Positions 1 through 50,077 of a DNA stretch of 64,000 nt are shown here, piece after piece (within the stretch, counting starts at the first letter, position 1; every line of letters starts with the position of its first letter). The stretch is from IMG/VR virus record IMGVR_UViG_3300007513_000001, positions 229,410-293,409 of that record; one strand, 5' to 3'. The position numbers and the translations under genes are program-made. The notes beneath the pieces are model-generated. The model was not told where the DNA came from, did not search any database, and saw only the letters and a program-made list of their open reading frames with translations.

Positions 1-414
1 AATGCTGAAAACATAAATGCAGCAGTTTCAGAAGAAGATACTGATAGCGTTGTTTTTCATTATGCTAGTTCTAAAAGAAATTCTGTTTCTTCTTCTACGG
101 TTCGACGCAGAAACGCTTCGGGAACCACTATTTCAGTCCCAGGCCTTTCTTTTGGAGGGCTATTAGAGAAATATAAGCCTGAAATTCTTAAAATTGATAT
201 CGAAGGAAAAGAGTATGATATTTTAGATTCGATTAAAGAGATACCAGATTTTGTAGAAGTTGTTGGTATTGAATTTCACAATACTCGAAAACCATATTCG
301 GAATATCCTTCTCGTTTTTTTCCAGAATCTACTTGGAAAAAAGTAGAGCACCCTATTTTGATGTACGGACAGAAAAAGGTTTTAGATTACACATTTTATC
401 GCAAAGTTGTTTAG
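1..414 (+). CDS. FkbM-family SAM methyltransferase, C-terminal part (runs off left edge)
   Basis: Frame 1 is open from base 1 to TAG 412-414 (not in ORF track); translation LLEKYKPEILKIDIEGKEYDIL...VVGIEFH has the FkbM KIDIEGxE motif. Confidence 0.7.
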   Translation, partial: NAENINAAVSEEDTDSVVFHYASSKRNSVSSSTVRRRNASGTTISVPGLSFGGLLEKYKPEILKIDIEGKEYDILDSIKEIPDFVEVVGIEFHNTRKPYSEYPSRFFPESTWKKVEHPILMYGQKKVLDYTFYRKVV

Positions 415-423
415 GAGAAAATA

Positions 424-840
424 ATGGTTGTTAATGGTTTTGATATTGACGGAGTGATTCACCTTGGAGATAGTGTCTGTGGAATCCGCCCTGGTCCTGG
501 TGATGTGATTATTACCGGTCGAAGTTTTGAGGAAGAGGCCGAAACTCTAGCTTTTCTTCGTCGTAATGGAATTAATAATCCAGTATTTTTTAACCAGTGT
601 CATTATGATGAAAAAACTCGTGAAGGTTCTGGTTGGCACAAAGGCGAAACTATTAAGTTGTTGCATCGAGCTGGCCTCAGCATTCGATATTTTTTCGAAG
701 ACGATGAAGTTCAAAAAGCCGAAATTGAAAGAATTTTAGCAGAAAAAGAAATCTGGAATATGCCAACCAAAGTAATTCACGTTAACAATCCACATGTAGC
801 GAAAGAGAATAGACGTCACTTAGAGGATTTACATGAGTAA
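424..840 (+). CDS. HAD-superfamily phosphatase (PNK-phosphatase-like)
   Basis: FDIDGV (DxD motif I), IITGRS (motif II), FFEDD (motif IV). Confidence 0.65.
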   Translation: MVVNGFDIDGVIHLGDSVCGIRPGPGDVIITGRSFEEEAETLAFLRRNGINNPVFFNQCHYDEKTREGSGWHKGETIKLLHRAGLSIRYFFEDDEVQKAEIERILAEKEIWNMPTKVIHVNNPHVAKENRRHLEDLHE

Positions 841-2278
841 TTCTGAGCTTCTTAAAATGACTGATAAGCAGCTTTTTGATGAAATTCCCTCTCATAAAAA
901 GCAAGATTTTATAGACTTTATAAAAGAGCTTAATCGAAGAGAGTATTTAGTTAGATTTGCAAAATCGTGCACCTTTGAAAGCTTTCAGCATTTACCTGGT
1001 ACTTCTTTTAAATTTGGTAATGGTTTTATCGTAAATGGAAAATCAGTCCCTTATTTCCACCCCAATCGTAGCTTTCATGATGAAATTATTTGGTTGAATG
1101 AAAATCTTTTCTACAACCCTCATGCTACTTTTGAAGACAAGCTCATCAACGCAGCGATTGTAAAGTTTTATGGGCCATCTAACACTTTGAAGCTTATTGC
1201 TAGCGGAACAGGAAAGAATTTTGTAGATTATAAACGATTCATAGGAGACGCTAAGTATCTTCAACAAGTTTGTGTAAATTTGGAAACAGCTGTGAAAAAT
1301 AAAGAGAAGATATACGGAACCACAGAACTAAGAACAAGCCTACAAACTGCTGCTCGAAACTACGCAAGAGACGTTGGTTCTCCAATAGATAAACTTGAAT
1401 TAATTCCGTTGGTAGATAGAAAAGTTAGATCATGTCGACCTTCTGATATTCTTTTTTGGTTTACTAAGATCGGTCCAGATTTTGTAAATTTTTATAAGAA
1501 GACTCCAAACATGGAAGAGTCTTTCAAGTTTTTAAATTCTTTTAGAGGGATTGGAAATTATTATGGTTATCATTTTAGTTGCAATCTTGCTCGTATGCCC
1601 TCCGTTGGAAATTTAATATTCAAGGGTACCCCTGGCAAAATCGATGAAGATGATGAATATGTTGTTCCGGGTGTTGGAGCGATGTCTGCGATAAATTGGT
1701 TTTATGAACACCGCGGCCACTCTATAAACACAAAAGTTGGAAAAAAATTAATAAACGCTATTCGCGAACACCAAAATGATTTCTTCGATTTAAAGAAATC
1801 TGACAATTCTAAATTTTATATGGAAAAAGTTTCTGAGCTTGGGTATTTTACTAATTTCGGCTGTGAAATATCTTGCTGCCAGTTCGGAGTTTATCGAAGA
1901 TTAAGAGAAGATAAAAAATTAGCTTTAAGAAGAGCAGCTGCACCAATTTCAAAAGAGGAAGTCAAAATGATTCTTACGCCAAAAACCCTAATGCAAAAAC
2001 TGGGTCTTATTTCAGAAGATAAGCCTTCTGAAGAACACATCCAAACCACCAATCCCGCTTTAGATTTTTCTTCTACAAGCAAAGAAGATTTAATTCTTGC
2101 TATTGTCGATGAATCTGGAGGAGCTTGTTCACATTCTGCAGTGGCAAAAATGATAGAAGAAAAGGGATATACTCAATATAAACAGTCTGGAAGCTGGAAA
2201 GAAAGCTGGGTAATAATGAGAGAATTAGTTAAAAAGGGTGCTCTAGTTAAAGATGGAAAATTTTATCGGAGGTCGTAA
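833..2278 (+). CDS. aGPT-Pplase / 5hmdU DNA kinase helical-domain-like DNA base-modification protein with C-terminal winged helix
   Basis: GIGNYYGYHFSCNL...DEYVVPGVGAMSAINW...CEISCCQFGVYRR resembles the HhH-fold aGPT-Pplase clade-1 pattern (GxFxxYq..DL...GPGA..GL...EhxLCEfxKY); last ~60 aa look like a wHTH; operon context. Confidence 0.55.
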   Translation: MSNSELLKMTDKQLFDEIPSHKKQDFIDFIKELNRREYLVRFAKSCTFESFQHLPGTSFKFGNGFIVNGKSVPYFHPNRSFHDEIIWLNENLFYNPHATFEDKLINAAIVKFYGPSNTLKLIASGTGKNFVDYKRFIGDAKYLQQVCVNLETAVKNKEKIYGTTELRTSLQTAARNYARDVGSPIDKLELIPLVDRKVRSCRPSDILFWFTKIGPDFVNFYKKTPNMEESFKFLNSFRGIGNYYGYHFSCNLARMPSVGNLIFKGTPGKIDEDDEYVVPGVGAMSAINWFYEHRGHSINTKVGKKLINAIREHQNDFFDLKKSDNSKFYMEKVSELGYFTNFGCEISCCQFGVYRRLREDKKLALRRAAAPISKEEVKMILTPKTLMQKLGLISEDKPSEEHIQTTNPALDFSSTSKEDLILAIVDESGGACSHSAVAKMIEEKGYTQYKQSGSWKESWVIMRELVKKGALVKDGKFYRRS

Positions 2279-3456
2279 TGCAAAACGTGAGGTGGGGAAC
2301 TATCATTCCCCTTATTGGGGGTAGCGCTATAGGGTGCTCTCAAGCCACTAAAAATAAGCCAGAATTTCATCTTAGTTATTCTGCTTTTGGCGCTAACGAA
2401 AAGTATTTAACCGATTATTGGAAAGACGTACCTCGTATAGTTTTAGATGAAGGTGGAGAAATCCCAAATCAGCAAATTGATTTTATCAACTCAGTTTGTC
2501 CATGCGCGGGTTTAAGTCAGCTTAATACTTCTAGAAGCAAAGATATGCGTGAATCTAAAAATTACTGGATGTACGAATCCGCTCAAAGGATAATGGGAGA
2601 ACTTAAACCGAGAGTTTACTGGGGAGAAAATGCTCCCGGCCTTTTTACTAATTCGGGTGCGTACGTACGTGACAAGCTTAAAACCCTGGCCAAAGAACAT
2701 GGTTATTCCTTTTCTCTTTATAAAACTGATACTCAAAAACATGGAATACCACAGCGAAGAGTAAGAACTTTTTATTTTTTTTGGAGAGATACTAATCCGC
2801 CTATTTTAAATTATTTTGATCAAACTCCTGTCCCTTTTGCAGAGTACATCAAAGAGATACCAGATACAGCAACTTTACAAGATCAGTTTAATATTGCGGG
2901 AAAAATTTCTGACAATTTTGATTCTTACGCTTTCGTTCTTCAGAAGTTGAAAATAACCCACAGAGAATTCGTGAAATCTAATGATTCCGGGTCTATTCAT
3001 TCAATTTTTTCTTACCTTGCTGAAAATGAACTTTTAAAAGAGTGCATAGACTGGATAGAAAAAAACAAAAATGAAGAAACAGCTGAACACAGAAGATTGA
3101 AAGCTATTTATAAAAAAGTTCAATCTGGTGGGAGATTTATGGATGCTTCTCCGGGGTATTATTATGCTAGAACTAACGCTATAGTGGGAAGGACTTTAAC
3201 GCATTTAGTTCACCCCACTGAAGATCGCGGCATGTCTATTCGAGAGCTGCTTCATATGATGGGGCTGCCTCATGACTTTGAAATGAGCGATAGAAAATCC
3301 TTGAATGTAATAGCGCAGAACGTTCCTACGTGTACAGCCCGAGATATGGCTACTCAAGTTATTGAATACTTAAACGGTGGTTTACAAATTGCAGAAAACA
3401 GTTTTTTAATGCAAAATAACTTAAAACAGGAGACCACGTTATGCGAGCCCTTGTAA
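2278..3456 (+). CDS. C5 DNA cytosine methyltransferase (divergent motif I)
   Basis: PCAGLS (catalytic motif IV), GENAPG (VI), PQRRVRTF (VIII), RGMSIRELLHMMGLP (IX), NVP (X); motif I is IPLIGG. Confidence 0.85.
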   Translation: MQNVRWGTIIPLIGGSAIGCSQATKNKPEFHLSYSAFGANEKYLTDYWKDVPRIVLDEGGEIPNQQIDFINSVCPCAGLSQLNTSRSKDMRESKNYWMYESAQRIMGELKPRVYWGENAPGLFTNSGAYVRDKLKTLAKEHGYSFSLYKTDTQKHGIPQRRVRTFYFFWRDTNPPILNYFDQTPVPFAEYIKEIPDTATLQDQFNIAGKISDNFDSYAFVLQKLKITHREFVKSNDSGSIHSIFSYLAENELLKECIDWIEKNKNEETAEHRRLKAIYKKVQSGGRFMDASPGYYYARTNAIVGRTLTHLVHPTEDRGMSIRELLHMMGLPHDFEMSDRKSLNVIAQNVPTCTARDMATQVIEYLNGGLQIAENSFLMQNNLKQETTLCEPL

Positions 3457-4427
3457 CTGGAGGTTGCGGATTTATTGGATCATGCATCTCTAAAAAATTA
3501 GTAGATTCAGGATGGGATGTTGAGATAGTTGACGATATGTCTAATGGGAATTATGAGTTTTTAGATGGCTATCGCATAAGATCAGTTCCGGTTCAGCTTG
3601 GTGAAAGTTTTGAAAACCAAGTCAAAAAGCAAGAACATCAAATTTTAGTTTTGGTTGGAGATTTTACTAGCTACGAAGTCGTTAGAAGAATTGTGGAAAA
3701 AAAATATGATGTAATATTTCATTGCGCAGCCAATCCACGCGTAGAATACTCAGTTCAAAACCCTGTTGAAACAACAGACGAAAATCTAACTAAAACAATT
3801 AAGCTTTTTACTCACTCTATTGGAAACGTCAAAAGGATAGTGTTTTCCTCTAGTTGTTCAATATACGGTGATCCGTGGACTCTTCCTACTACAGAATCTC
3901 ACGGAAAAAATCCAAATAGTCCATACGCGCTTCAAAAGCTTTGTGTCGAAGAGTTTGCGCGACTGTATTCTAAAACTTATGATTTAGACATAGCTTGTTT
4001 GCGATACTTCAATGTTTATGGCCCTTATCAATATGGAGGGTCTCCATATTCTACAGCTATCGTATCTTGGTGTGACAAAGTAAAAAATGGTTTACCGCTT
4101 CGCAGTGATGGTGATGGAACGCAGTCTAGAGATATGGTTTTTGTAGAAGACGTTGCGAGAGCAAATATTTTAGCTGCGACTCATAAAGAAAACTTTAGTG
4201 GAAAATGCATTAATATTGGAACTGGAGCTTCTTATACTAATAATCAAATTTTAGATATTTTTAAGTCTAAGTTTCCCGACATAGAAATTAGTCATGCACC
4301 AGAAAGATCCGGAGACGTAAAACACACTCAGGCATGCACAAAAGAAGCAAGGAATTTTTTAGGATTCAGAACTGAATATTCTTTAGAAGAAGGTCTAGAA
4401 AAAACTTTTGACTGGTGGGAGATTTGA
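3441..4427 (+). CDS. NAD-dependent NDP-sugar epimerase/dehydratase
   Basis: ALVTGGCGFIGS Rossmann motif, SSCSIYG, YALQK (YxxxK), LRYFNVYGP, RDMVFVEDVA. Confidence 0.95.
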   Translation: MRALVTGGCGFIGSCISKKLVDSGWDVEIVDDMSNGNYEFLDGYRIRSVPVQLGESFENQVKKQEHQILVLVGDFTSYEVVRRIVEKKYDVIFHCAANPRVEYSVQNPVETTDENLTKTIKLFTHSIGNVKRIVFSSSCSIYGDPWTLPTTESHGKNPNSPYALQKLCVEEFARLYSKTYDLDIACLRYFNVYGPYQYGGSPYSTAIVSWCDKVKNGLPLRSDGDGTQSRDMVFVEDVARANILAATHKENFSGKCINIGTGASYTNNQILDIFKSKFPDIEISHAPERSGDVKHTQACTKEARNFLGFRTEYSLEEGLEKTFDWWEI

Positions 4428-4984
4428 TGAAAAATGAATTTGTTATGTTTGTCGGACCCATGTTTGGTGGGAAAACTACTAAACTTTTAAGCGCGATAGA
4501 CAGATATCGATATCAAGGTAGAGACATTCATGTGTTTAAACCGATAGTAGATGAAAGATATTCTAAGGAAGAAATAGTAACCCATTGGGGAACTAAAATT
4601 CCAGCTACTAGAATCACCTCTCCAGTTAGCAGCCTTCATCCAGTATTTGAGCCTTTCTATCACCTTAAAGAATCTTGCGTTTTAGCAGTAGATGAAGCTT
4701 TTATGTTAGAGGGAGTTGGAAAAGTTTTGGTCGACCTGTTTAGAAGAGGCCACACAGTGCTTGTTTCTTCTCTTCAGCTTTCTTCTGATTTTACTCCATA
4801 TAAAGAGCTTCAAACCATGCTTCCGTACGCTACAAAAGTAGAAGTTTGTCCGGCAGTATGCTCTACGTGCGGCGCAGACGCGCACTATACTAAAAAGGTT
4901 GGCGGTCGTTCTGATCACGCAATCGAGGTAGGGGGATCAGAGATGTATCAGCCTAAGTGTTTAGAGCATTTTTATTTGGGATAA
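4427..4984 (+). CDS. tdk: thymidine kinase
   Basis: GPMFGGKTT P-loop, VDEAF Walker B, CSTCG zinc knuckle, GGSEMYQPKC; ATG overlaps upstream TGA. Confidence 0.93.
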   Translation: MKNEFVMFVGPMFGGKTTKLLSAIDRYRYQGRDIHVFKPIVDERYSKEEIVTHWGTKIPATRITSPVSSLHPVFEPFYHLKESCVLAVDEAFMLEGVGKVLVDLFRRGHTVLVSSLQLSSDFTPYKELQTMLPYATKVEVCPAVCSTCGADAHYTKKVGGRSDHAIEVGGSEMYQPKCLEHFYLG

Positions 4985-5019
4985 TTATGAAATTCTAGTT
5001 AATTCTAGTTATAATTTTA

Positions 5020-5460
5020 TTGAAGGATATTTTAACATTGTCAGACAAACACCACAAATCATCTTGGAAGTCTAGATCTTCTCTTGCTGTTACCCCATGG
5101 GGATCTGAGATCCGATGGGCTGCAACTGCCGGAGTAAATGGAAAATGCCTCAGCATTAACAAGGGCATGAGAACAAGCTTAAAATACTATAAGTTAAAAG
5201 ACGAAGTTCTTTTTCTTTACAAGGGGAAGATTTTAGTAACTCACGGAGATGAAAAAACTATAACGCATCCAGAAACACATCCATATGTTCAATCTATTCT
5301 TGCGCCTGGAGAAATGGTAATAGTGCAGAGCCATTGCCCTTACAGGATTGAAGCTTTAGAAGATTCTGAAGTTATTGAAATAGGCTCTCGAGGTCCAGGC
5401 GACACAGTCATGCTGGAGGATGATTTCGGGAGAGCAGATAAAGCAGATAAGGAGCTTTAA
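5020..5460 (+). CDS. cupin, mannose-6-phosphate-isomerase-like
   Basis: TPWGSE...GKCLSINKGMRTSLKYYKLKDE resembles KPWGxE...SLQxHxxKxE cupins; TTG start. Confidence 0.6.
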   Translation: MKDILTLSDKHHKSSWKSRSSLAVTPWGSEIRWAATAGVNGKCLSINKGMRTSLKYYKLKDEVLFLYKGKILVTHGDEKTITHPETHPYVQSILAPGEMVIVQSHCPYRIEALEDSEVIEIGSRGPGDTVMLEDDFGRADKADKEL

Positions 5461-6366
5461 ATGACAGTAACTGACCCATCTTCAGTCAATGTAGTGATAT
5501 ATCACGCAGACTGCACTGACGGATTCGGAGCTGCATACGCAGCTTGGAAACTACTTGGAAATAGAGCTGAATATCATGCATGTAAACATGGTAAACCACC
5601 GCCAGACGTAAAAGGAAAAGTTGTTGCTATTTTAGATTTTTCTTATGACAATGCTACAACTAAACGAATGATAGAAGACGCGGAAGGGCTGATCATCATC
5701 GATCATCATAAGTCAGCAGTCGTAGAATTGCACGATATCAGTAATGCTATTTTTGATATGGCTCATTCTGGAACAGTTCTTTCTTGGAACTTTTTTCACC
5801 CGGGAAAAGAATCTCCTAAGTTTTTGACTTATATTGAAGATCGCGATCTTTGGAAGTGGGAACTCCCATATTCAAAAGAATTTAGTGCAGCATTTGATAT
5901 GGTTCCATTTGAATTCGAGGAATTTGAAAAATTTGAAGACGATTCTGTATTCGATGACGCTGTAAAACGAGGTTCTTACATTTTGGCGTATTCAAAAACT
6001 GTTGTAAAGAAAGTTTGTGAAAAAGCTGAGCCGAGAAAGTTTGAAGGTAAGGATGTACTAGTCGTCAATGCGTCTCACTGGATGTCAGAGATTGGAGCTC
6101 GTCTTTCTCCAGACTGCGATTTTGCGATGATCTGGTATTGGGATCACGTTGCGCAGCACACTAAAGTTTCTCTAAGAGCTTTTCATGAAACTGTGGACGT
6201 TTCTGAAATTTCTAAAAAGTTCGGTGGCGGCGGCCACAAAAAAGCAGCTGGATTTCAGCTTTCCAAAAGTAAGCATGTTGAAGATTTATTTGATAAGCCG
6301 AAAACAACTAGAAAAAAATCTACTAAATCTTCAGCTAAAACTGTAAAGAAAACGGAGACTTCTTGA
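5461..6366 (+). CDS. DHH/DHHA1 phosphoesterase
   Basis: YHADCTDGFGAA, ILDFS, IDHHKS, IEDRDLW, GGGGHKKAAGF. Confidence 0.9.
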   Translation: MTVTDPSSVNVVIYHADCTDGFGAAYAAWKLLGNRAEYHACKHGKPPPDVKGKVVAILDFSYDNATTKRMIEDAEGLIIIDHHKSAVVELHDISNAIFDMAHSGTVLSWNFFHPGKESPKFLTYIEDRDLWKWELPYSKEFSAAFDMVPFEFEEFEKFEDDSVFDDAVKRGSYILAYSKTVVKKVCEKAEPRKFEGKDVLVVNASHWMSEIGARLSPDCDFAMIWYWDHVAQHTKVSLRAFHETVDVSEISKKFGGGGHKKAAGFQLSKSKHVEDLFDKPKTTRKKSTKSSAKTVKKTETS

Positions 6367-6764
6367 GACCGTCGTGGGATAAAATATGGATGGATTTCGC
6401 AAGCTCAATCGCTGAGAGATCTTACGACCCAAGATTTCAAGTGGGCGCTGTTATTATTACTGAAGACAACAGCCAAGTTTTAGCTGTTGGATATAACGGA
6501 AATTACGCTGGAGGTCCCAATGAAGTAGAATCAGAAACCCCTGGGGAATCTGGCATGCTTCATGCTGAAATTAATGCATTACTTAAAATGGATTACAACA
6601 ACCCTAAAAAGAAAAAGCTTTATCTAACTCTTTCTCCTTGTAGAATGTGCGCAAAGGCTATAATTAATAGCGGAATTAATGAAGTAGTTTATGCTGAATC
6701 TTATAGGGACCTATCGGGGATAGAACTTTTAAAAGAATGTGGCATATCTGTAAGACACGTTTGA
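6363..6764 (+). CDS. dCMP deaminase
   Basis: RPSWD N-terminus, VGYNG, HAEINA, SPCRMC zinc ligands; TTG start overlaps upstream TGA. Confidence 0.92.
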   Translation: MRPSWDKIWMDFASSIAERSYDPRFQVGAVIITEDNSQVLAVGYNGNYAGGPNEVESETPGESGMLHAEINALLKMDYNNPKKKKLYLTLSPCRMCAKAIINSGINEVVYAESYRDLSGIELLKECGISVRHV

Positions 6765-8212: not shown

Positions 8213-8570
8213 TAAATTAGCTAATCGTCTCTTGCACGCAAGATATAAACAGCGGCTTCTTGAAGCGATATCAGAGGTAGATGTTGTAGACGATCAAGGA
8301 AATATTATTATTGCTAAAGACTTAAAAGTTCGCCATAAAGATTCTGGTTACGAATATACGGTAGACGATGTAGTTGATGACGCCGGCGCAATTAGTGTAG
8401 TTTTAAGAGAACCTTCAGAGCCCAGGTTTGAGCCGGCTGGCTCCGAAGCGCTATTGGGCTCTCCGCCAAACCAACAGCTTGATCTAAACGAAGACGACGC
8501 TGCCGAAGAAGAAGAGGTAGTTTTTATAGTAGACCAGGCAGAATTTGAAAAGGAGTACGAAGTCAAATGA
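8202..8570 (+). CDS. hypothetical acidic protein
   Basis: ORF overlapping neighbours; RLLEA leader-like site. Confidence 0.75.
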   Translation: MKIDKLANRLLHARYKQRLLEAISEVDVVDDQGNIIIAKDLKVRHKDSGYEYTVDDVVDDAGAISVVLREPSEPRFEPAGSEALLGSPPNQQLDLNEDDAAEEEEVVFIVDQAEFEKEYEVK

Positions 8571-9253
8571 GCAATTTAGAAAGAGATATAAAAAATCAAA
8601 TTATTTCTGATTTGGGATTAGAAAATAGAGAGCTCTCTGAAGCTTATGTGACTCAAGCGAAGCAGTTTGAATTGAACACTGAATTATTGAGTTCGAAAAC
8701 TAAGAAAGTTCAGCAAGAGATGATGAATGGTTATGTTGAAACTCTTAATCACGTTGCTGCTTCACTAGATACTGCCGCAGAAGACAACGCTAATTCAGAT
8801 TCTTCAAAGTTCAGATCTTTAAAAATAGACGAAGTTTACAACATGAATGGTGCGTTTTTGTTCGGAATGCACTTTGAAAATATATCGGACCCTCAATCTA
8901 AAATAATGGTAGATTCTTTGACATTTATGCGCTTAGAGAGAGACTTTGGGACTTTTGATGAGTGGCAAAAAGATTTCATCGGTTGCGCCCTATCATCTCG
9001 CTCGGGCTGGGTAGTGACAGTTTATAACGGGTTTTTAAATCGGTACATGAATGTCTGCATTGATTCTAACGATATTAGTGTACCACTCAATTGTTATCCC
9101 CTTATAGTATTAAGCATGCACCCAGAGTCTTACGTGAGGGATTATCTGGGGGATAAGAAAGCCTATGTTTATGCGATGATGCAAGAATTTAAGTGGGACG
9201 TAGTAGAATCTAGATTCAAAAAATCTGATAAAATCAGCAAGGTGCTTAAATGA
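8567..9253 (+). CDS. Fe/Mn superoxide dismutase-fold protein lacking the metal ligands
   Basis: GYVETLN, RDFGTFDEWQKDF, SGWVV, PLIVLSM..ESYVRDY, KKAYV..FKWDVVESRF align by eye to SOD; DVWEHAYY replaced by SMHPESYV. Confidence 0.8.
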   Translation: MSNLERDIKNQIISDLGLENRELSEAYVTQAKQFELNTELLSSKTKKVQQEMMNGYVETLNHVAASLDTAAEDNANSDSSKFRSLKIDEVYNMNGAFLFGMHFENISDPQSKIMVDSLTFMRLERDFGTFDEWQKDFIGCALSSRSGWVVTVYNGFLNRYMNVCIDSNDISVPLNCYPLIVLSMHPESYVRDYLGDKKAYVYAMMQEFKWDVVESRFKKSDKISKVLK

Positions 9254-25372: not shown

Positions 25373-26992
25373 ATGCAGATTAATAAGACTCTGCTTTTTG
25401 ATGCTGAGGCTAGAAAAGAGATATTAGATGGCGTTGAGACTATAGCAAAAGCAGTAAAGAGTACGATGGGACCAAACGGTCAGACGGTAGTTATAGAAAG
25501 AGAAGGAGCTCCGCCGATCTTAACTAAAGACGGCGTTACGGTTGCTCATGCTGTAAATTTGAGCAGCAATTTTAAAAACCTTGGAGTTCAAATGGTCAAG
25601 CAAGCAGCTGCTCAAACTGCTGAAGAAGCTGGCGATGGCACAACTACTTCGACTGTTTTAACTCACACTCTAACTGCTGAAGGGATGAAATTAATTTCGG
25701 CGGGGTATAAGAGCTCTGAAATTAGAGCTGGTATGAAATGGGCAGTAGAAGAAATTTTGAAAGATCTTGAAAATAGATCTCAACCAGTTCGCGAAGATGA
25801 TGACATAATCAACATCGGGGCTATTTCTGCTAATGGAGATAGAAAGATTGGAGAGCTCTTGCTAGAAGCAATGAAGTCTGTGGGTCCAGAAGGAGTAATT
25901 TCTATTGAAGAAGCGAAAGGGTTTACTACTTCTTTGAAAACAGTAGACGGATTCCAGCTTGACAGGGGATACATTTCTCCATATTTTGTGACTAATCACG
26001 ATAGACTGAGTGTAGAATTTTCTAATCCAAAAATTTTGTTAGCCAATAAGACAATATCTAGTGTAACTGAACTTTTGCCACTTTTAGAACAAGCTCACAA
26101 AAATTCGATTCCATTAGTTATTGTAGCTAATGACGTAGACGGAGAAGCTTTAAAAACTTTGGTGGTTAATCACTCAAAGGGAATAGTGAAAGTTTGTGTT
26201 GTGAGGGCGCCAGAGTTTGGGGATGGCAGAGTAGACAGCATGAGCGATCTTTCTTTATTGTTCGGCACTAAGGTGGTTTTTTCTGGAGAAGAAATACATC
26301 AAAACATAGAAGATTTGGGAACATGCGAAAGAATAGAAGTGTTTAGATCTAAATCTATTTTTGTTGGACCGTCTTGCGAAGATTCTGATTTAGAAGATAG
26401 AGTATCCAATATTCAAAACATGCTAATTTCTCCAGAAACTGAAATAAATCAAAAACTTCTTTTGTCTCGAAGGTTAAGCAGATTGCAGGGCGGAATTGCA
26501 GTTATTAGAGTTGGCGGACATACAGAGCTAGAATTAAAAGAGCGAAAAGATAGAGTTGAAGATGCGCTCCATGCAACTCAAGCTGCGGCCGCTAAAGGGA
26601 TTTTACCGGGTGGCGGAATTGCTTTAGTCAGATCTTCAAGAAATATATTAGATAGGTTTGAAGATATTGCTCCATCGGGCTCTACTGAAGATTTCGGCGC
26701 CGGAGTAAGAGTTGTAATGTCGGCTTGTGAATCTCCGCTCCGTCAAATAGTTTCAAATTCCGGCGGAGCTCCAGATGTAGTATTTAATAGAGCTCTCAAT
26801 CCCGAAGAAGCTGATGAAGGATATGATGCCCGGAAAGGCGAGTTTGTTAATATGTATAATAGGGGTATCATCGATCCCTATAGCGTTGTAAGCTCTGCTT
26901 TGAAGAATGCATGCTCAGCAGCATGTTCAATTATTTCTATCGGATGTGCAATGGTTGAGGAAAAAGATGCAAGTATTGATAAATTAAGTTGA
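25373..26992 (+). CDS. groEL: chaperonin GroEL, divergent
   Basis: TKDGVTVA, AGDGTTT, ISANGD, DRGYISPYF, LQGGIAVIRVGG, RKDRVEDAL, PGGG, GIIDP; no GGM tail. Confidence 0.97.
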   Translation: MQINKTLLFDAEARKEILDGVETIAKAVKSTMGPNGQTVVIEREGAPPILTKDGVTVAHAVNLSSNFKNLGVQMVKQAAAQTAEEAGDGTTTSTVLTHTLTAEGMKLISAGYKSSEIRAGMKWAVEEILKDLENRSQPVREDDDIINIGAISANGDRKIGELLLEAMKSVGPEGVISIEEAKGFTTSLKTVDGFQLDRGYISPYFVTNHDRLSVEFSNPKILLANKTISSVTELLPLLEQAHKNSIPLVIVANDVDGEALKTLVVNHSKGIVKVCVVRAPEFGDGRVDSMSDLSLLFGTKVVFSGEEIHQNIEDLGTCERIEVFRSKSIFVGPSCEDSDLEDRVSNIQNMLISPETEINQKLLLSRRLSRLQGGIAVIRVGGHTELELKERKDRVEDALHATQAAAAKGILPGGGIALVRSSRNILDRFEDIAPSGSTEDFGAGVRVVMSACESPLRQIVSNSGGAPDVVFNRALNPEEADEGYDARKGEFVNMYNRGIIDPYSVVSSALKNACSAACSIISIGCAMVEEKDASIDKLS

Positions 26993-45199: not shown

Positions 45200-45277
45200 A
45201 GGCCCATAGCTCAATCAGGTCAGAGCATTTGTCTCATAAACAAAGGGTTCCGGGTTCGAGTCCCGGTGGGCCTACCA
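45200..45277 (+). tRNA. tRNA-CAT, probably Ile2 (TilS substrate) rather than Met
   Basis: Acceptor AGGCCCA/TGGGCCT, anticodon arm TTTGT-CTCATAA-ACAAA, T-arm CCGGG-TTCGAGT-CCCGG, encoded CCA; C4:G69 and C5:G68. Confidence 0.92.
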
Positions 45278-45290
45278 CTTTAAAAAGAGG

Positions 45291-46348
45291 GTGCAAGTGA
45301 ACAGTCCAGTAATTCGTCCGCAAGTATTAAAACTCAGAAGCGTCTGGAAGAATGAAGCTACAGATTTTACTCCATGGATGGCTTCCAATGAGGGCATATC
45401 TTGGCTATGCCAGGATCTTGGTATTGAAAGCTTGAAGGTAGAGGGTGTTGAAGTAGATACTGACGAAGGCAAAAGAATTGATATTTTAGCCGCTCTTCCA
45501 AACGGAGATTCCATTGTTATAGAAAATCAATTTAATGCAGCAGACCACAGGCACTTTCACAACATCCAACACTATGCTGTTTCGTCTAATTCTAATACAG
45601 TTATTTGGATTGCAGAATCGTTTCCGAGTCTTTACGTAAAGCTTATTGAATCTATTAACGCTTCTGACTGGATTGACATCGTTGGTGTAGTTGCAAGAGT
45701 TAACTCCGCAGGAGGCCCTCTTCCAACGCTACAGTTTGAAGTGATTTCAGCAAGTGAAGAAGCTCTAGAGAGAATGAAAGGAGACAGTGATGTCGAAGCA
45801 ACCGTTGCAGATAACGACGCTCTTTCCAGTTTCTATAAAGATTATTTTGACCAGCTTAAGCCTGCTTTAGATTCTTATCTTAGGGGCACAACGCCCCACA
45901 AACGAGGCACAAAAAAGAAGTGGCGCAGTTATGCTGAATGGAACTTCGAAAAAGGCGCTTGGATGAAATGGCAAATTTGCTTTAATCAACAGCGAGGCCG
46001 CCCGGGAGAGTATAGGGTTTCAATTCTTTTTAATCATATTGAAGATGAAAAGAATTTGGAGAGACTAAATTACATTAAGCAAAATAAAGATAGCTTGCTT
46101 TCTGGCATCTCGGTAGATTTTGTCGAAGATTGGGATTCTACTGTTGGCTGCCGAGGGCAAAAAGTTCATTTTAAATTTCCGCGTGAAGTTAACTATCGAA
46201 ATATTTCTCCTAGCGATAAAATTGAATTAGTTGATTGGACAAAAGATTTGATGCGTAATATTACGAAAAATGCATCTAATCTGGACATTAAATCGTGCTC
46301 TGGCGCTAATACTTACTCTAAGAATGGAGTAAACAATCATCTTTCTAT

Positions 46349-46358
<10 letters not shown>
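45291..46358 (+). CDS. DUF4268-type PD-(D/E)xK endonuclease-like protein
   Basis: WKNEATDFTPW, RIDILA, IVIENQ, DHRHFHNIQHY; stop codon lies inside tRNA-Asn. Confidence 0.75.
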
Positions 46359-46424
<66 letters not shown>

Positions 46425-46441
46425 TCTTTCGAGGTATATAA

Positions 46442-48031
46442 ATGTGCGGATTTTTAACTTATTTTGGAGAAAATGCAGACGTTAAAAAGCTCGCAAAATT
46501 TTCTTCTAAAATTCAATATAGGGGACCAGACAACACTAAAGATGTTTTAGTTAACGAAAAGCTTTTTATGTCTTTTCACAGATTGGCTATTATTGATGTA
46601 ACAGAATTAGGAGATCAACCCCTGCGCCACCCGGACGACGCTGGTTTAGTTTTGGTGTGTAACGGAGAAATCTATAACTACAAAGCACTTATTCAGCAAT
46701 ATAATTTTAAGCCAGGGTCAAATTCAGATTGCGAAGTTATTTTGCATCTTTATAAAAAGTTTGGGATTAAAAAAGCGGTAGAACAACTTGACGGAGTTTT
46801 TGCTTTTTCTTTATACGATTCTAACAAAGATGTTTTATATGCAGCTAGAGATCCCCATGGTGTTCGTCCATGCTTCTTAGCTTTAGAAAAAGATTTTTCA
46901 GCTATCGCTAGTGAAGCTAAAGTTCTAAAAGATATTTCAGATAACATTACTCATTTTCTGCCAGGCACTTGGTGGTCATCAGAATACCCTAACGTTATGA
47001 GCTCCTATTTTAATGTGGAACACAATCCCGTAATTTCAGTGTCGGAAAAAGATGCTTGCGAAAAAATAAAATCGCTTTTAACAGAATCTGTCAGAAAAAG
47101 AATGATGTCAGAAAGAGAAGTGGGGTGTTTGTTATCGGGCGGTTTAGACTCTAGTTTGATTTCTTCTCTAGTTGCTTCAATGTGCGATGACCCTAAAAAA
47201 CTTAAGACTTTTTCTATTGGAATGGAAGGAAGTCCAGATTTAGAATATGCTCAAAAAGTCGCAGCTCATATCGGTTCTGACCATCACAGCATCCAGCTTT
47301 CTCAACAAGATTTTTTAGACGCGATTGACGTAGTGATTTATAATATAGAATCTTACGATACAACCACCGTAAGAGCGAGCGTGGGAAACTATTTAGTTTC
47401 CAAGTACATTAGAGAAAATACTGACGTAAAAGTAGTATTCAACGGAGACGGAGCAGATGAAGTCTGTATGGGGTATGTATATAATGTCAATGCTCCATCT
47501 ACCGAAGATTTCTATTCAGAAAATCATCGCCTGTTAAAAGAAATATACTTGTTTGATGTTTTGAGATCAGATAGAAGTATTAGCTCAAACGGCCTCGAAG
47601 CTAGAACTCCTTTCTTAGATAAAAGTTTTACAAAATACTATATGTCCATACCGCCAAAAATGAAGATGTTTGGTTTAGATAAGCCAGAAAAATATCTCCT
47701 CAGGAAATCTTTCGACGGGACTGGATTGTTGCCAGACGAGGTTTTATGGAGGAGTAAGTGCGCATTTTCCGATGGCGTCAGTAGTATTAAAAATTCCTGG
47801 CATAAGACTCTTAAAAGCTTTATAGATTCTCAAATATCTGATGAGCAATTCGAAAATGAAAAAGATTCTTTTGATTGCTGCAAGCCAGTTTTGAAAGAGA
47901 GCTATTTTTACCGAAAAATATATGAAAACCACTTCGGAGATTCCATGAATTTGATACCTCACTTCTGGATGCCCAAGTGGACTATAGCTAATGACCCTTC
48001 AGCTAGAGAACTAGAAAACTATAAAGAATAA
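46442..48031 (+). CDS. asnB: glutamine-hydrolysing asparagine synthetase
   Basis: N-terminal MCG, RGPD, FHRLAI, NGEIYNY, ARDP, LSGGLDSS, YDTTTVRAS, GDGADE, EARTPFLD, WMPKW..DPSAR. Confidence 0.97.
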   Translation: MCGFLTYFGENADVKKLAKFSSKIQYRGPDNTKDVLVNEKLFMSFHRLAIIDVTELGDQPLRHPDDAGLVLVCNGEIYNYKALIQQYNFKPGSNSDCEVILHLYKKFGIKKAVEQLDGVFAFSLYDSNKDVLYAARDPHGVRPCFLALEKDFSAIASEAKVLKDISDNITHFLPGTWWSSEYPNVMSSYFNVEHNPVISVSEKDACEKIKSLLTESVRKRMMSEREVGCLLSGGLDSSLISSLVASMCDDPKKLKTFSIGMEGSPDLEYAQKVAAHIGSDHHSIQLSQQDFLDAIDVVIYNIESYDTTTVRASVGNYLVSKYIRENTDVKVVFNGDGADEVCMGYVYNVNAPSTEDFYSENHRLLKEIYLFDVLRSDRSISSNGLEARTPFLDKSFTKYYMSIPPKMKMFGLDKPEKYLLRKSFDGTGLLPDEVLWRSKCAFSDGVSSIKNSWHKTLKSFIDSQISDEQFENEKDSFDCCKPVLKESYFYRKIYENHFGDSMNLIPHFWMPKWTIANDPSARELENYKE

Positions 48032-48091
48032 ATTTTATACACTTTTGGTGTTGTGGGTATAGTTTCTTAATCTACGTTTAAGGAGATAAAA

Positions 48092-48391
48092 ATGCTAGAT
48101 AAAATTAAGTCACTTTTGACGAAATACAAGGTACACGTAAGCGTTGTTGGTGGGGCTTTAGTTATTGCTACTGTTTACGGCCAGTGCACTTTAGAGCCAA
48201 ACGTTGAAGCAGTTGAAGAAGCAGTTGAAGAAGCTGCCGATCAAGCAGCTAACTCAACCACGTCTAACGAAGACAAAAAGGTTGAAGCGGCAGCGGCAGA
48301 TGCAGCTATCATGACTGAAGACGCGACTAACGCATCTGAAAATGAAAGTGCTGATACCACTACAGAAGCTACAGAGACTAAAGAAGATTAA
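48092..48391 (+). CDS. small lipoprotein-like acidic protein
   Basis: Hydrophobic N-terminus ending YGQC; A/T/E-rich tail; SD AGGAG. Confidence 0.7.
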   Translation: MLDKIKSLLTKYKVHVSVVGGALVIATVYGQCTLEPNVEAVEEAVEEAADQAANSTTSNEDKKVEAAAADAAIMTEDATNASENESADTTTEATETKED

Positions 48392-48409
48392 AAATAATTA
48401 TGTTTTTTA

Positions 48410-48438
48410 TTGAACAACAGAGTTTTGAAGTTTAAAAT
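48410..48438 (+). promoter_or_regulatory. sigma70-type promoter upstream of the large ncRNA candidate
   Basis: TTGAAC-N17-TAAAAT. Confidence 0.5.
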
Positions 48439-48480
48439 AAAACATAATTTACTAAACGTTCTTTAACATTGCTAATAAAA

Positions 48481-49132
48481 GACCTTAGTTCTTGGGTCTA
48501 CAAACCTGGATGAGATTACCGATCTCCAGGCGCTAGCGAAAGCTGGTGATAGAGAAAACCTCGCTCAGGAAAAAGCTGTTCTTACGGACCTGCCCGCCTG
48601 ACTAAGAGAGGGGATGCGTAAAGGAGGGTGGTACCTCTGAAAATCATCCAGTGATTCGATGCATGGGTTCCCATACCACTGGGAAAATACTGCTGAGAGT
48701 ATCCGCGGACTTGTAGGTTCATCGTGGAAACGGGATAAGGGGACTAACCAAGAAAAAGTCTTGGGAAGAGAGGTTAATACCTTTTAGAATCTAACTGTCG
48801 GTGATAGAAGTCTCTCTGGCGGAATCGGAAACGAGACCGTCGTCCCGAAAGGGGTCGTATGGACATCCTCCCAAGGTTTGGAAATGCGACGCGCAACTAA
48901 GAGGTGAAGTGTACAGCTCACTCAAAGGCGCGCAGAATATCATAATACGACAGTAAGGCGTGCTGTTCCGTAGTCTTACGGCTAAGAACAGGGAGAAAGC
49001 TCGCGAACGGCGTTACTTGCCGGTGTGCTTACATCTAACCCAAAGGGGACAGGCTCAAAAGGCTTGATGATCACGAGCAGAGAGAATAGAAGTGCTAAAA
49101 CTCTCCCCCTTTTTAACAAGACCCGAGAGGGC
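48481..49132 (+). ncRNA. large highly structured ncRNA candidate (~650 nt; ROOL/GOLLD size class or new)
   Basis: No credible ORF, GC-richer than flanks, more than 12 visible helices, several GNRA-capped (CUAGC-GAAA-GCUGG, CGU-GGAA-ACG, UCG-GAAA-CGA, CCC-GAAA-GGG, CCC-GAGA-GGG); lies in the tRNA region. Confidence 0.75.
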
Positions 49133-49144
49133 AAAGAGAAAAAA

Positions 49145-49573
49145 ATGACAGTAGAAATCGGTAGCAAAGTAGTAGTTCATTATAAAGGAACATTAAACAA
49201 CGGTGAAGAATTCGACAGCTCATATTCAAGAAATGAGCCGCTAAGTTTTACCGTAGGAAACGGAGAAACAATCGCGGGTTTTGATTCTGCTGTTGTTGGG
49301 ATGTCTATTGGGGAAGTAAAAAATATTACCCTGAGCCCATCCGAAGGGTATGGGGACGTAAATCCAGAAGCGTTTCAAAAGATTTCAAAGAATCAGTTTC
49401 CGTCAGATTTTGAACCATCAGCTGGCACTTTAGTCGAGGGAATCAATACCCAAGGCCAAAAAGTTAGAGCCATCATTGCAGAAGTTTTTGACGAAGATTT
49501 AGTTCTTGATTTTAATCACCCGATGGCTGGAAAAGAGATGAATTTCGAAATTCAGCTAGTCAACTGCGAATAA
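49145..49573 (+). CDS. FKBP-type peptidyl-prolyl isomerase with insert-in-flap domain (SlyD/SlpA-like)
   Basis: VVVHYKGTL, FDSS, IAGFDSAVVGM, EGYG, LDFNHPMAGK; start moved to ATG 49145. Confidence 0.93.
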   Translation: MTVEIGSKVVVHYKGTLNNGEEFDSSYSRNEPLSFTVGNGETIAGFDSAVVGMSIGEVKNITLSPSEGYGDVNPEAFQKISKNQFPSDFEPSAGTLVEGINTQGQKVRAIIAEVFDEDLVLDFNHPMAGKEMNFEIQLVNCE

Positions 49574-49580
49574 ACAAACT

Positions 49581-49656
49581 GCGGGAGTAGCTCAATTGGT
49601 AGAGCTTCAGCCTTCCAAGCTGATTGTTGAGGGTTCGATTCCCTTCTCCCGCTCCA
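49581..49656 (+). tRNA. tRNA-Gly (TCC)
   Basis: GCGGGAG/CTCCCGC, TCAGC-CTTCCAA-GCTGA, U73, encoded CCA. Confidence 0.97.
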
Positions 49657-49666
49657 TGGAGGTAAA

Positions 49667-49804
49667 ATGGCTAGGGTAAAAATATCAGATTTAGTTCATC
49701 AACAAAAGATTCTTGAAGACAAAATTAAGAAGATACAAATTGTTCTTTGGTCTACTGTTTTGTTTGTTGCAGTTTTTGGATATAAAGTATTGTTTGCCGT
49801 TTAG
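49667..49804 (+). CDS. 45-aa single-TM protein (not in ORF track)
   Basis: ATG after GGAGG; MARVKISDL...IVLWSTVLFVAVFGYKVLFAV. Confidence 0.6.
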   Translation: MARVKISDLVHQQKILEDKIKKIQIVLWSTVLFVAVFGYKVLFAV

Positions 49805-49814
49805 GGGAGACTTA

Positions 49815-50045: not shown

Positions 50046-50077
50046 ACATCTAGCTATTTTAGTTAGAATTAATTTAT

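Follow-up and report, generated by a model that had tools for sequence, protein, structure and literature searches.

A marine jumbo phage (IMG/VR record IMGVR_UViG_3300007513_000001) carries a conserved gene set that includes an inositol-making enzyme pair, a methyltransferase, an esterase-like protein and a predicted DNA-base-flipping enzyme, next to a putative dCMP hydroxymethylase. The best reading, held with a probability of about 0.5, is that the module decorates 5-hydroxymethylcytosine (5hmC) in the phage DNA with an inositol-derived group through post-replicative transfer of a free, phage-made, possibly O-methylated inositol. No published description of such a system was found. The module also occurs in T4-like phages of Aeromonas. 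For phages 44RR, 31 and 25, genes 42 and 56 but no glucosyltransferase are reported, and any further modification of their hmC is described as unknown (PMC2993671).

Genes at the start of the window

The stretch analysed, here called the window, comprises 64,000 nucleotides (positions 229,410 to 293,409 of the record), and all coordinates refer to it unless genome positions are stated. A sequence-only reading had described nine contiguous, mostly overlapping genes in positions 1-6764, and this observation was confirmed, with all nine genes located on the + strand. The window opens within a gene for an FkbM-family SAM methyltransferase, of which it holds only the C-terminal part (1-414). The full gene spans genome positions 229107-229823 and starts 303 nt upstream of the window (PF05050, E 1e-14; TIGR01444, 81 bits). 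It is followed by a small HAD-like phosphatase of 138 aa (424-840), which has no Pfam hit and is supported by PHROG 415 'polynucleotide kinase' (E 4e-7) and an N-terminal FDIDGV motif.

The next gene (833-2278) encodes a helix-hairpin-helix (HhH) protein of 481 aa, which matches PF18723 HMUDK_hel with 30.4 bits against a cut-off of 25. Its AF2 model has a pLDDT of 89.8 and resembles PaMx11 gp46 (PUGT, PDB 8z2m) with Z 9.9, QNG1 with Z 9.2, and MjOGG with Z 8.0. In BFVD, the SP10 5-hmdU DNA kinase and HMUDK_hel proteins are matched at prob 1.0. The HhH motif N251-G259 (NLARMPSVG, 1583-1609) is nearly invariant in an alignment of 41 sequences. A putative catalytic dyad, E345-x3-C349 (GCEISCCQF, 1865-1879), is invariant in the same alignment and shares the E-x3-C-[KQE]-[WF] motif with E243/C247 of PaMx11 gp46 and with PaMx11 gp50. 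These residues are essential in M6 gp51 and ViI gp247 (PMC8989533), while alanine substitutions of gp46 E243 and C247 lowered its DNA binding (PMC11472151). The C-terminal residues ~410-481 (2060-2275) form a predicted winged-helix domain with VIA Z 10-11 to the DNA-binding domains of MecI, Fur and Zur. This domain is present only in the sub-lineage of the window, as most homologues stop at ~380-420 aa. The 481-aa protein contains no P-loop kinase domain, and no PF18748 kinase was detected anywhere in the 293-kb genome.

The start of a divergent C5-cytosine-methyltransferase-like gene (2278-3456; PF00145, 70 bits) overlaps the stop of the HhH gene in the sequence TAATG, with GGAGG 5 nt upstream. 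The motifs PLxGG, PCAGLS, ENAP, QxRxR and QNVP are invariant. It is followed by an NAD-dependent NDP-sugar epimerase/dehydratase (3441-4427; PF01370, 165 bits; GalE model 174 bits, below its cut-off) and a thymidine kinase (TK; 4415-4984; PF00265, 111 bits). A small cupin-like protein (5020-5460) is supported by PHROG 7851 only (E 7e-15), without a Pfam, NCBIfam or PDB sequence match, and its earlier label as an isomerase is unverified. A DHH/DHHA1 phosphoesterase (5461-6366) matches PHROG 4771 with E 3e-77, with PF02272 above its cut-off (30.8 vs 25.9 bits) and PF01368 below it (22 vs 28.1). The last gene is a dCMP deaminase (6363-6764; PF00383, 82 bits). The gene overlaps are real, namely 833/840, 2278/2278, 3441/3456, 4415/4427 and 6363/6366.

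The conserved module and its inferred target base

The functional unit differs from the one originally proposed and lies mostly upstream of the window, at genome positions 225301-231687. It comprises a predicted dCMP hydroxymethylase (genome 225301-226146), DUF6378, a 352-aa Rossmann+SGNH protein termed N352 (genome 226842-227900), a myo-inositol-1-phosphate synthase (MIPS; genome 227903-229105), FkbM, HAD and the HhH protein. In 75 viral loci carrying the HhH protein, MIPS is present in 71, N352 in 68, HAD in 64, FkbM in 51 and DUF6378 in 45. At 55% identity these loci form 7 lineages, and MIPS, HAD and N352 are present in 7 of 7, while FkbM is present in 4 of 7. Among isolated phages, the HAD gene occurs in exactly the same 19 records as the MIPS gene.

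The proteins are further tied together by natural fusions. ORF233c of Aeromonas phage 31 is an N352::HhH fusion, and the SGNH::HhH arrangement is found in Aeromonas phages 31/44RR2.8t. The proteins P0077 and P0142 are FkbM::HhH fusions, and P0144 is an FkbM::HhH::N352 triple fusion (prob 100, E 3.5e-84), encoded on a 5.7-kb contig with the order MIPS, HAD, fusion, a protein of 188 aa, and thymidylate synthase (TS) homologue.

The remaining genes of the window are less closely associated. Orthologues of the C5-methyltransferase-like gene lie beside the module in 20 of 75 loci and 3 of 7 lineages, making it an optional partner, and it also occurs without the module in S-TIM5-type cyanophages. 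The epimerase, TK, cupin and DHH genes accompany the module only in the close relatives of the window, with the epimerase in 2 of 7 lineages and TK, cupin and DHH in 1 of 7. A dCMP deaminase lies near the module in 4 of 7 lineages, as ordinary nucleotide metabolism. These neighbours give no evidence for a glycosylated base here, in contrast to the sequence-only reading, which had included sugar-nucleotide enzymes in the pathway.

Upstream DNA had been named beforehand as the place to look for a hydroxymethylase. The TS homologue found there is closest to CMP/dCMP hydroxymethylases (5jnh, E 2e-22; T4 gp42, E 3e-18). It carries L143D, a retained D169, and N177D, as does every module-linked TS homologue, and this signature for dCMP hydroxymethylation is defined in PMC13326640. 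All five larger genomes examined have this second TS homologue, and the phage also keeps ThyX and TK. The precursor base is therefore taken to be 5hmC and not 5hmdU, an inference from signature residues.

The MIPS matches M. tuberculosis Ino1 (PDB 1GR0), an actinobacterial-type inositol-3-phosphate synthase, with E 1e-88 over 347 residues. Like that enzyme with its inositol monophosphatase, it is paired with a phosphatase, but here a minimal HAD protein and not an IMPase-fold enzyme. However, it scores below the TIGR03450 equivalog cut-off (324 vs 638 bits), and the five-membered-cyclitol synthase Ari2 (6K96, E 6e-48) is the next relative, so the ring product is not certain. The Aeromonas phages lack MIPS, but have an SGLT/YidK-type Na+:solute symporter directly upstream of the fusion gene. 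N352 has a predicted SGNH fold (prob 1.0) with Z 10-12 to carbohydrate O-acetyl esterases/transferases and an invariant GDSH.

Proposed pathway and competing readings

The interpretation in the sequence-only reading, a base-hypermodification operon outside the described pathways, is partly supported. Membership of the HhH protein in the HMUDK_hel/aGPT-Pplase HhH superfamily, its lack of a kinase, and the resemblance of the locus to an undescribed hypermodification pathway hold, whereas the precursor base and the composition of the unit had to be corrected. In the pathway proposed here, the TS homologue makes 5hm-dCMP, which is incorporated as 5hmC. MIPS and the HAD protein, the latter as inositol-1-phosphate phosphatase, would then make free myo-inositol from glucose-6-phosphate. 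The HhH protein, as the 5hmC group transferase, would bind DNA, flip out the 5hmC and attack C6 with Cys349, with Glu345 as the acid, which is the chemistry that amino-acid:DNA transferases use on phosphorylated 5hmU. A hydroxyl of the cyclitol would add to the exocyclic C5 methylene, giving an ether-linked inosityl-methylcytosine. N352 may take the place of the P-loop kinase, either activating the 5-CH2OH group as an ester or acylating/deacylating the adduct, and FkbM may O-methylate the adduct or the cyclitol. The C5-methyltransferase-like protein is regarded as an accessory, either for ordinary 5mC formation or as a second C6-thiolate enzyme acting on 5hmC. The likely biological role is protection of phage DNA from host nucleases.

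The steps of this pathway are inferred. The hydroxymethylase step rests on signature residues, the inositol supply on homology and co-occurrence, and the transferase step on fold, motif and fusions, whereas the roles of N352 and FkbM are guesses. The adduct, the linkage and even the DNA-level site of action are likewise inferences and not measured chemistry. PF18723 scores above its cut-off in all members tested, but proteins of this family have no demonstrated activity, and M6 gp55 was dispensable in vitro (PMC8989533). No kinase or other proven activator of the hydroxymethyl group is present, and an SGNH enzyme in that role has no precedent. One T4-like locus has an NTP-transferase nearby, which hints at an NDP-activated donor rather than a free one. 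Furthermore, seven GT1/GT2 glycosyltransferase matches lie 115-145 kb away in the phage's own genome and could decorate hmC instead. No T4-type dCTPase was found, which leaves the extent of C replacement undefined, and a complex prediction for N352 and HhH gave no answer.

Among the alternatives, none of which appears likely, the least improbable is that the inositol genes form an auxiliary metabolic module making a free, possibly methylated, cyclitol for the infected cell, for example an osmolyte. The HhH, SGNH and FkbM proteins would then act on something other than inositol, such as another decoration of hmC DNA, or a nucleotide or nucleoside. Indeed, MIPS and HAD occur without the HhH protein in Menderavirus 7-deazaguanine clusters, Caulobacter phage Cr30 and Ralstonia phage RP13, so inositol may serve another purpose. 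In addition, the Aeromonas phages have the fusion enzyme without MIPS, and the nucleoside glycosylase QNG1 is a comparably good fold match. This is countered by the presence of MIPS and HAD in 7 of 7 lineages, directly adjacent even in the 5-gene contig L107, by the sugar/polyol-type symporter in the position of the synthesis genes in Aeromonas phages, and by the E-x3-C dyad, which fits pyrimidine C6 chemistry and not glycosylase chemistry. Somewhat more doubtful is a nucleotide-activated donor, such as CDP- or UDP-inositol or a sugar, transferred by the N-terminal Rossmann-like domain of N352 or by glycosyltransferases encoded elsewhere, with the HhH protein only presenting the base and the epimerase supplying the donor in this lineage. 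An NTP_transferase lies next to the module in locus L006, Aeromonas phage 25 pairs an N352 homologue with UDP-galactopyranose mutase and has no HhH protein, giant-virus proteins combine an N352-like model with glycosyltransferase domains, and the GT1/GT2 genes are also in line with this view. However, the HAD phosphatase conserved in all lineages argues for a free, dephosphorylated cyclitol, and the invariant Glu/Cys dyad in the HhH protein argues for catalysis and not mere presentation of the base. Moreover, no fold search of the window's own N352 model gave a glycosyltransferase match for the N-terminal domain, and the epimerase is not conserved with the module.

Two further readings are considered improbable. 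A thymidine hypermodification based on 5hmdU, as in M6, ViI or PaMx11, draws on the Pfam family name and on fold relatives that all come from 5hmdU systems. Against this, the only TS homologue apart from ThyX has Asp at the N177 position, which makes it dCMP-specific, the module-linked TS homologues in other phages carry the same signature, ThyX and TK are kept, and the genome has no PF18748 kinase and no PF18724 transferase. Alternatively, the region could be an ordinary nucleotide-metabolism and replication block with an orphan Dcm-type methylase, and virion DNA would carry at most 5mC or 5hmC. The region does sit among RNR, ThyX, dUTPase, TK, dCMP deaminase, DnaE, DnaB and RecA, and the DNA assembled from short-read marine metagenomes in several studies. 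Such a block does not explain the strict co-occurrence and repeated fusions of MIPS, HAD, FkbM, N352 and the HhH protein across 7 lineages of unrelated phage types.

Relation to described systems

The thymidine hypermodification systems combine 5-HMUDK with an amino-acid:DNA transferase of aGPT-Pplase clade 2 (PF18724), such as M6 gp51, ViI gp247 and PaMx11 gp46/PUGT. With these the module shares the HhH DNA-glycosylase-like fold, an E-x3-C dyad at the equivalent C-terminal helix, a TS-family hydroxymethylase encoded beside it, a free small molecule as the likely nucleophile, and post-replicative logic. It differs by lacking a PF18724 match and a P-loop kinase, and by its predicted dCMP-specific hydroxymethylase. 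The glycine-binding residues W146/K150 of gp46 are replaced by Y/Y/H, and the partners are MIPS, HAD, FkbM and an SGNH protein instead of PLP, radical-SAM or FAD enzymes. PF18723 proteins include the helical domain of the SP10 5-hmdU DNA kinase and the standalone PaMx11 gp50, M6 gp55, phiW-14 and phiRSL1 proteins. The same E-x3-C-x-F motif is seen in gp50 (EVEHTLCEF), and such proteins are likewise found fused to, or next to, a second catalytic module. In the present case this module is an SGNH protein and/or FkbM and not a P-loop kinase, and the context is cytosine rather than thymine.

Phage clusters of C5-methyltransferase, TET/5mYOX and glycosyltransferase also encode a C5-methyltransferase homologue in a cytosine-hypermodification neighbourhood. 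No Tet_JBP match was found in the genome, although the control for that search was silent, and 5hmC would here come from the nucleotide pool. The methyltransferase-like protein has PCA instead of PCQ and an atypical motif I. In T4-like phages, hmC or hoC is decorated by the T4 alpha/beta-glucosyltransferases or, in RB69/DLP3, as arabinosyl-5-hydroxycytosine. The module contains no GT-B glycosyltransferase, its TS homologue has D169 (hydroxymethylase) and not the D169N of 5hodCMP synthases, and its inferred donor pathway makes a carbocyclic polyol and not an NDP-sugar. Shared with these phages are a pre-replicative TS-homologue step followed by post-replicative decoration of the C5 substituent and, with RB69/DLP3, a small HAD-type phosphatase in the donor pathway.

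Gene content of the locus and its surroundings

The 293,409-bp IMG/VR virus record is rated complete and has direct terminal repeats, and the window is its last 64 kb (229410-293409), with a G+C content of about 38%. Near-identical sequence is held by marine and seawater metagenomes from several studies, where public sequencing runs contain the locus only as assembled contigs. A megablast search of the region against 50,697 phage records found nothing. The locus considered here covers window positions 1-6764, corresponding to genome 229410-236173. The nine genes named in the sequence-only reading are all present on the + strand with short overlaps, and its observation is thus confirmed. Family scans confirmed six of them, namely HMUDK_hel for 833-2278, a C5 DNA methylase for 2278-3456, an extended-SDR epimerase for 3441-4427, thymidine kinase, DHH/DHHA1 and dCMP deaminase. 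PHROGs added a HAD/PNK-phosphatase-like protein (424-840) and a cupin-like protein (5020-5460). The first 414 bases are the end of an FkbM methyltransferase gene that starts 303 nt upstream of the window and scores above the cut-offs of PF05050 (55 bits) and TIGR01444 (81 bits). The stop of the HhH gene (833-2278) and the start of the methyltransferase-like gene overlap as TAATG, with GGAGG just upstream. A promoter and terminator scan gave no more sites than shuffled sequence.

The 40 kb upstream of the window were also analysed. In genome coordinates, an upstream block with DnaB, RNR, ClpP, an amidase, ThyX, a sulfotransferase-like protein and Fpg/Nei is followed by a DnaE-type polymerase (221666-225265), a divergent thymidylate-synthase (TS) homologue (225301-226146), DUF6378 (226143-226424), dUTPase (226411-226845), a 352-aa protein termed N352 (226842-227900), a myo-inositol-1-phosphate synthase (MIPS; 227903-229105), and FkbM with the window genes from 229107 onwards.

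The HhH protein and the genes that accompany it

The HhH protein has 159 homologue clusters at 90% identity and 66 clusters in a representative library of 1.84 billion proteins. Those with a record of origin come from phage genomes or from viral or metagenomic contigs. Most members comprise 380-420 aa, while the sub-lineage of the window adds about 100 residues. The window protein is the single copy in the genome and scores 30.4 bits against PF18723 (HMUDK_hel, gathering cut-off 25 bits), with relatives at 28.9-56.9 bits. Every family member tested exceeds this cut-off, while none hits PF18724, the amino-acid:DNA transferases of aGPT-Pplase clade 2. For PF18724 there was no hit even at E<=10, and none elsewhere in the genome. 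Neither a P-loop domain in the protein nor a PF18748 kinase anywhere in the 293-kb genome was found, and the usual association of PF18723 with a P-loop 5-hmdU DNA kinase is absent.

An AlphaFold model built on 41 sequences has a pLDDT of 89.8. A Foldseek search of the PDB with the full model gave nothing significant, whereas VIA-align and BFVD comparisons revealed relatives. The predicted core (residues 24-379) best matches PaMx11 gp46/PUGT, the 5-phosphomethyl-dU glycinyltransferase (8z2m, Z 9.9, 230 residues), followed by the queuosine glycosylase QNG1 (Z 9.2) and the archaeal MjOGG (Z 8.0). The added C-terminal residues ~410-481 form a winged helix in the model (Z 10-11 to MecI and Fur). 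Among viral models, Aeromonas phage 31 ORF233c, the SP10 5-hmdU DNA kinase, several HMUDK helical domain proteins, including those of phiW-14, phiRSL1 and Lucky3, and aGPT-Pplase clade 1 all match at prob 1.0. At the sequence level, a profile search of the PDB found no link from the HhH family to PaMx11 gp46 or gp50, and hhalign was not significant. The link therefore rests on Pfam, fold and motif.

The 41-sequence alignment shows a nearly invariant HhH motif (NLARMPGVG) and an invariant G-x-E-I-x-x-C-Q. Glu345 and Cys349 are invariant, with the spacing and the following aromatic residue of gp46 E243/C247 (EVETILCKW) and of the PF18723 protein PaMx11 gp50 (EVEHTLCEF). This equivalence is based on the motif and the aligned range of the fold match rather than on a residue-level superposition. 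The Glu/Cys pair is essential in M6 gp51 and ViI gp247, where the Cys is proposed to attack pyrimidine C6 and create an exocyclic C5 methylene (PMC8989533). In gp46, alanine substitutions of E243 and C247 lowered DNA binding (PMC11472151). The residues of gp46 that hold glycine, W146 and K150, correspond to Y243/Y244/H247 here, which fits a different co-substrate.

To identify partners, 79 viral loci and several further contigs were collected, and their ORFs were compared with the genes of the window. Of the 75 loci that hold the HhH gene, 71 have MIPS, 68 have N352, 64 have the small HAD protein, 51 have FkbM, 45 have DUF6378, 23 have a TS homologue within 9 kb, and 20 have the methyltransferase-like gene. 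Clustering of the HhH proteins at 55% identity gives seven lineages. MIPS, HAD and N352 lie near the HhH protein in all seven, FkbM, a TS homologue within 9 kb and dCMP deaminase in four each, the methyltransferase-like gene in three, DUF6378 and the epimerase in two each, and thymidine kinase, cupin and DHH in one each. Gene order is largely kept as N352 - MIPS - HAD - FkbM - HhH. Fusions confirm the functional link: ORF233c of Aeromonas phages 31 and 44RR2.8t (795 aa) is N352 (33% identity, E 4e-53) followed by the HhH core (42% identity), the homologues P0077 and P0142 are FkbM::HhH, and the homologue P0144 (981 aa) is FkbM::HhH::N352. The 5.7-kb contig of P0144 reads MIPS - HAD - fusion - 188 aa - TS homologue and is the module in its most compact form. 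Overall, the module recurs in marine, freshwater and other viromes in at least seven lineages of large phages.

The TS homologue is closest to the CMP hydroxymethylase MilA and to T4 dCMP hydroxymethylase, not to thymidylate synthases. In E. coli ThyA numbering, N177D gives dCMP specificity, L143D/E gives hydroxymethylation, and D169N marks the 5-hydroxy-dCMP synthases of RB69 and DLP3, as defined in a 2026 study (PMC13326640). The phage's own protein retains the catalytic Cys, reads DYPCTH...MRSNDAVFGFCND and has Asp at all three positions, as does every module-linked homologue that could be found, including gene 42 of Aeromonas phage 31 and the divergent second TS homologue in each of the four IMG/VR viral records scanned whole. 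The predicted product is therefore 5hm-dCMP, not 5hm-dUMP and not 5-hydroxy-dCMP. The phage keeps ThyX and TK, so thymidine supply is normal.

The MIPS matches PF01658 with 78 bits and M. tuberculosis Ino1 (1GR0) at E 1e-88. However, it scores 323.6 bits against TIGR03450, below the equivalog cut-off of 638 bits, and the five-membered-cyclitol synthase Ari2 is its second-best PDB relative. The HAD protein carries an FDIDGV motif, and its only family match is PHROG 415 at E 4e-7, without a Pfam, NCBIfam or PDB sequence match. Among isolated phages, MIPS and the HAD protein occur in exactly the same 19 records, which is read as a synthase-phosphatase pair yielding a free cyclitol. The Aeromonas phages lack MIPS and gave no HAD match at E<=1e-3. 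Instead, they have an SGLT/YidK-type Na+:solute symporter directly upstream of the fusion gene, which fits import of the same kind of substrate. A free nucleophile is what amino-acid:DNA transferases use.

A model of N352 built on 19 sequences has a pLDDT of 92.2. Residues 154-352 are predicted to form an SGNH fold (Foldseek prob 1.0; VIA Z 10-12 to carbohydrate O-acetyl esterases and peptidoglycan O-acetyltransferases). GDSH (160-163), GNIDIRHH, and E325 and H331 are invariant, the latter two replacing a canonical block V DxxH. The N-terminal Rossmann-like domain, with an invariant S31-H32, has no informative match. In the fusions, N352 occupies the place that the P-loop kinase has in 5-HMUDK. 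Its chemical role is a guess, either ester activation of the hydroxymethyl group or acylation/deacylation of the adduct. Complex prediction for N352 and the HhH protein gave no answer and is not evidence either way. In Aeromonas phage 25 (NC_008208.1 150841-154112), which has gene 42 but no glucosyltransferase, a standalone N352 homologue without the HhH protein lies next to a UDP-galactopyranose mutase and a 358-aa protein. N352 can therefore also work in sugar-type contexts, and a galactofuranose-type decoration of hmC is possible in this phage.

The methyltransferase-like protein (2278-3456) scores 70 bits against PF00145, above the cut-off. Its Pro-Cys (PCAGLS), ENAP and QxRxR motifs are invariant in eight sequences, and QNVP is also kept. 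It has PCA for PCQ and PLxGG for the FxGxG of motif I, and no invariant Asp or Glu between residues 15 and 117, where SAM-binding motifs II and III are expected, so its sequence neither establishes nor excludes SAM binding. Orthologues lie beside the module in three lineages (34% identity, E 7e-80), but also occur without it in S-TIM5-type cyanophages and a Pseudoalteromonas phage. In cyanophage S-TIM5 (NC_019516.2 137304-141741; 32% identity), a TS homologue with N177D (dCMP-specific) and Cys at the L143 position lies 2 kb away. The protein is treated as an optional accessory. It may be an ordinary 5mC methylase for residual cytosines, or it may act on 5hmC by the same C6-thiolate chemistry, an idea based on reported in vitro work with M.HhaI-type enzymes.

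DUF6378 (93 aa) is far better conserved than its neighbours, with 57-65% identity where they have 26-40%, and is fused to DUF4406, a nucleoside-deoxyribosyltransferase-like domain, in other phages. Its EExxER and DNLLDA motifs suggested a small MazG-like NTP pyrophosphatase, meaning a dCTPase, but a PDB profile search, hhalign against gp56 of Aeromonas phage 31 and an Atlas search gave no support. Likewise, searching the phage's own genome with gp56 for a T4-type dCTPase gave only a chance hit inside DnaB.

Inferred chemistry and its standing

What the analysis itself establishes are the gene content, the co-occurrence and fusions, the signature residues and the family and fold matches, and the existence of the conserved module is close to certain. 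The catalytic roles of the HhH protein, the HAD protein, N352 and FkbM, action on DNA and the product are inferred from sequence and predicted structure. Action on 5hmC in DNA is more likely than not. The overall mechanism, in which a free, phage-made and possibly O-methylated inositol would be transferred to 5hmC, is assigned a probability of about 0.5. The specific product, an ether-linked, possibly O-methylated, inosityl-methylcytosine made by an HMUDK_hel-family enzyme with an SGNH-type partner instead of a kinase, is rather doubtful, although not excluded. The interpretation in the sequence-only reading, which proposed a modified base outside the described pathways from a mix of helical protein without a kinase, C5 methyltransferase and sugar-nucleotide enzymes, is partly supported: the missing kinase and the relation to base-hypermodification proteins hold, while the methyltransferase-like gene is optional and the epimerase accompanies only two of seven lineages.

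Several findings weigh against the inositol-based mechanism. PF18723 has no proven activity, and M6 gp55 was dispensable in vitro (PMC8989533). The MIPS-HAD pair also occurs without the HhH protein in Caulobacter phage Cr30, in Ralstonia phage RP13 and in Stenotrophomonas Menderavirus phages. In the latter, as in vB_SmaM_Ps15 (NC_070951.1 83412-88938), the pair sits inside a 7-deazaguanine DNA-modification cluster of GTP cyclohydrolase, MIPS, HAD, QueC, a DpdA/TGT-like transglycosylase and QueE, which could mean a cyclitol-bearing deazaguanine. Cr30 gp122/gp123 and RP13 ORF122 were considered as hidden homologues of N352 or the HhH protein and rejected, and the window's cupin is not related to the Cr30 'cysteine dioxygenase'. 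One T4-like locus has an NTP-transferase and a nucleoside phosphorylase next to the module. Furthermore, the jumbo phage has seven matches to GT1/GT2 glycosyltransferase families spread over about 30 kb (genome 83000-113100), which could act on DNA, the virion or the host envelope. No TET/JBP match was found, but the control genomes were silent too, so this result is weak.

The closest known system is thymidine hypermodification by 5-HMUDK plus amino-acid:DNA transferase. The locus shares with it the fold superfamily, the Glu/Cys dyad, a hydroxymethylase partner and probably the use of a free nucleophile, but differs in the base (cytosine), in lacking a kinase, and in all accessory enzymes. 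By Pfam and fold, the HhH protein belongs to PF18723 and not to PF18724, and its partner TS homologue has the N177D signature rather than that of a dUMP hydroxymethylase. Literature searches for inositol, FkbM or AADT together with phage cytosine modification found no description of this module, although they did not extend to Iyer et al. 2013, which defined these families. None of the module's Pfam names appears in the text or supplements of the MetaGPA study of modified-cytosine viromes (PMC8670742).

If correct, the product would be the first DNA base decorated with a carbocyclic polyol, adding a cyclitol as a new chemical class to phage DNA hypermodification and an enzyme logic that needs neither a kinase nor a glycosyltransferase, with free inositol made by the phage or imported. 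It would give PF18723, whose members were dispensable in the only reconstitution reported, its first function and extend aGPT-Pplase-type chemistry from thymine to cytosine. According to a 2010 review, Aeromonas phages 44RR, 31 and 25 have genes 42 and 56 but no glucosyltransferase, and nothing was known about further modification of hm-dCMP in gene 42-encoding phages that lack glucosyltransferases (PMC2993671); the review asked how Aeromonas T4-like phages that make hm-dCMP but lack glucosyltransferases protect their DNA. The module would supply the missing hmC-decorating enzyme of phages 31 and 44RR2.8t, whereas phage 25 carries only the SGNH-type partner. As phages 31 and 44RR2.8t are in culture collections, this question becomes directly testable. 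New base-modifying enzymes are also useful as tools, and such modifications affect restriction, CRISPR targeting and the sequencing of phage DNA.

Further genes of the jumbo phage

In the replication block upstream of the window, the sulfotransferase-like protein (PF00685 E 7e-8) lies directly before a complete Fpg/Nei DNA glycosylase (genome 217502-219144). Within the window, a 228-aa protein at 8567-9253 has an Fe/Mn superoxide dismutase C-terminal domain (PF02777, E 3e-12). The phage also encodes a GroEL-type chaperonin (25373-26992; PF00118, 219 bits) and a full-length Hsp70/DnaK (51624-53498; PF00012, 832 bits). Four tRNA genes (Met, Asn, Gly, Arg) lie at 45200-50154, and an asparagine synthase at 46442-48031. 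A 923-aa protein at 57167-59938 combines DUF192, a CCA-adding/poly(A) polymerase head domain and a C-terminal PAP2 phosphatase domain. At the end of the genome (window 60001-64000), the G+C content rises to 45-47%, against about 38% elsewhere.
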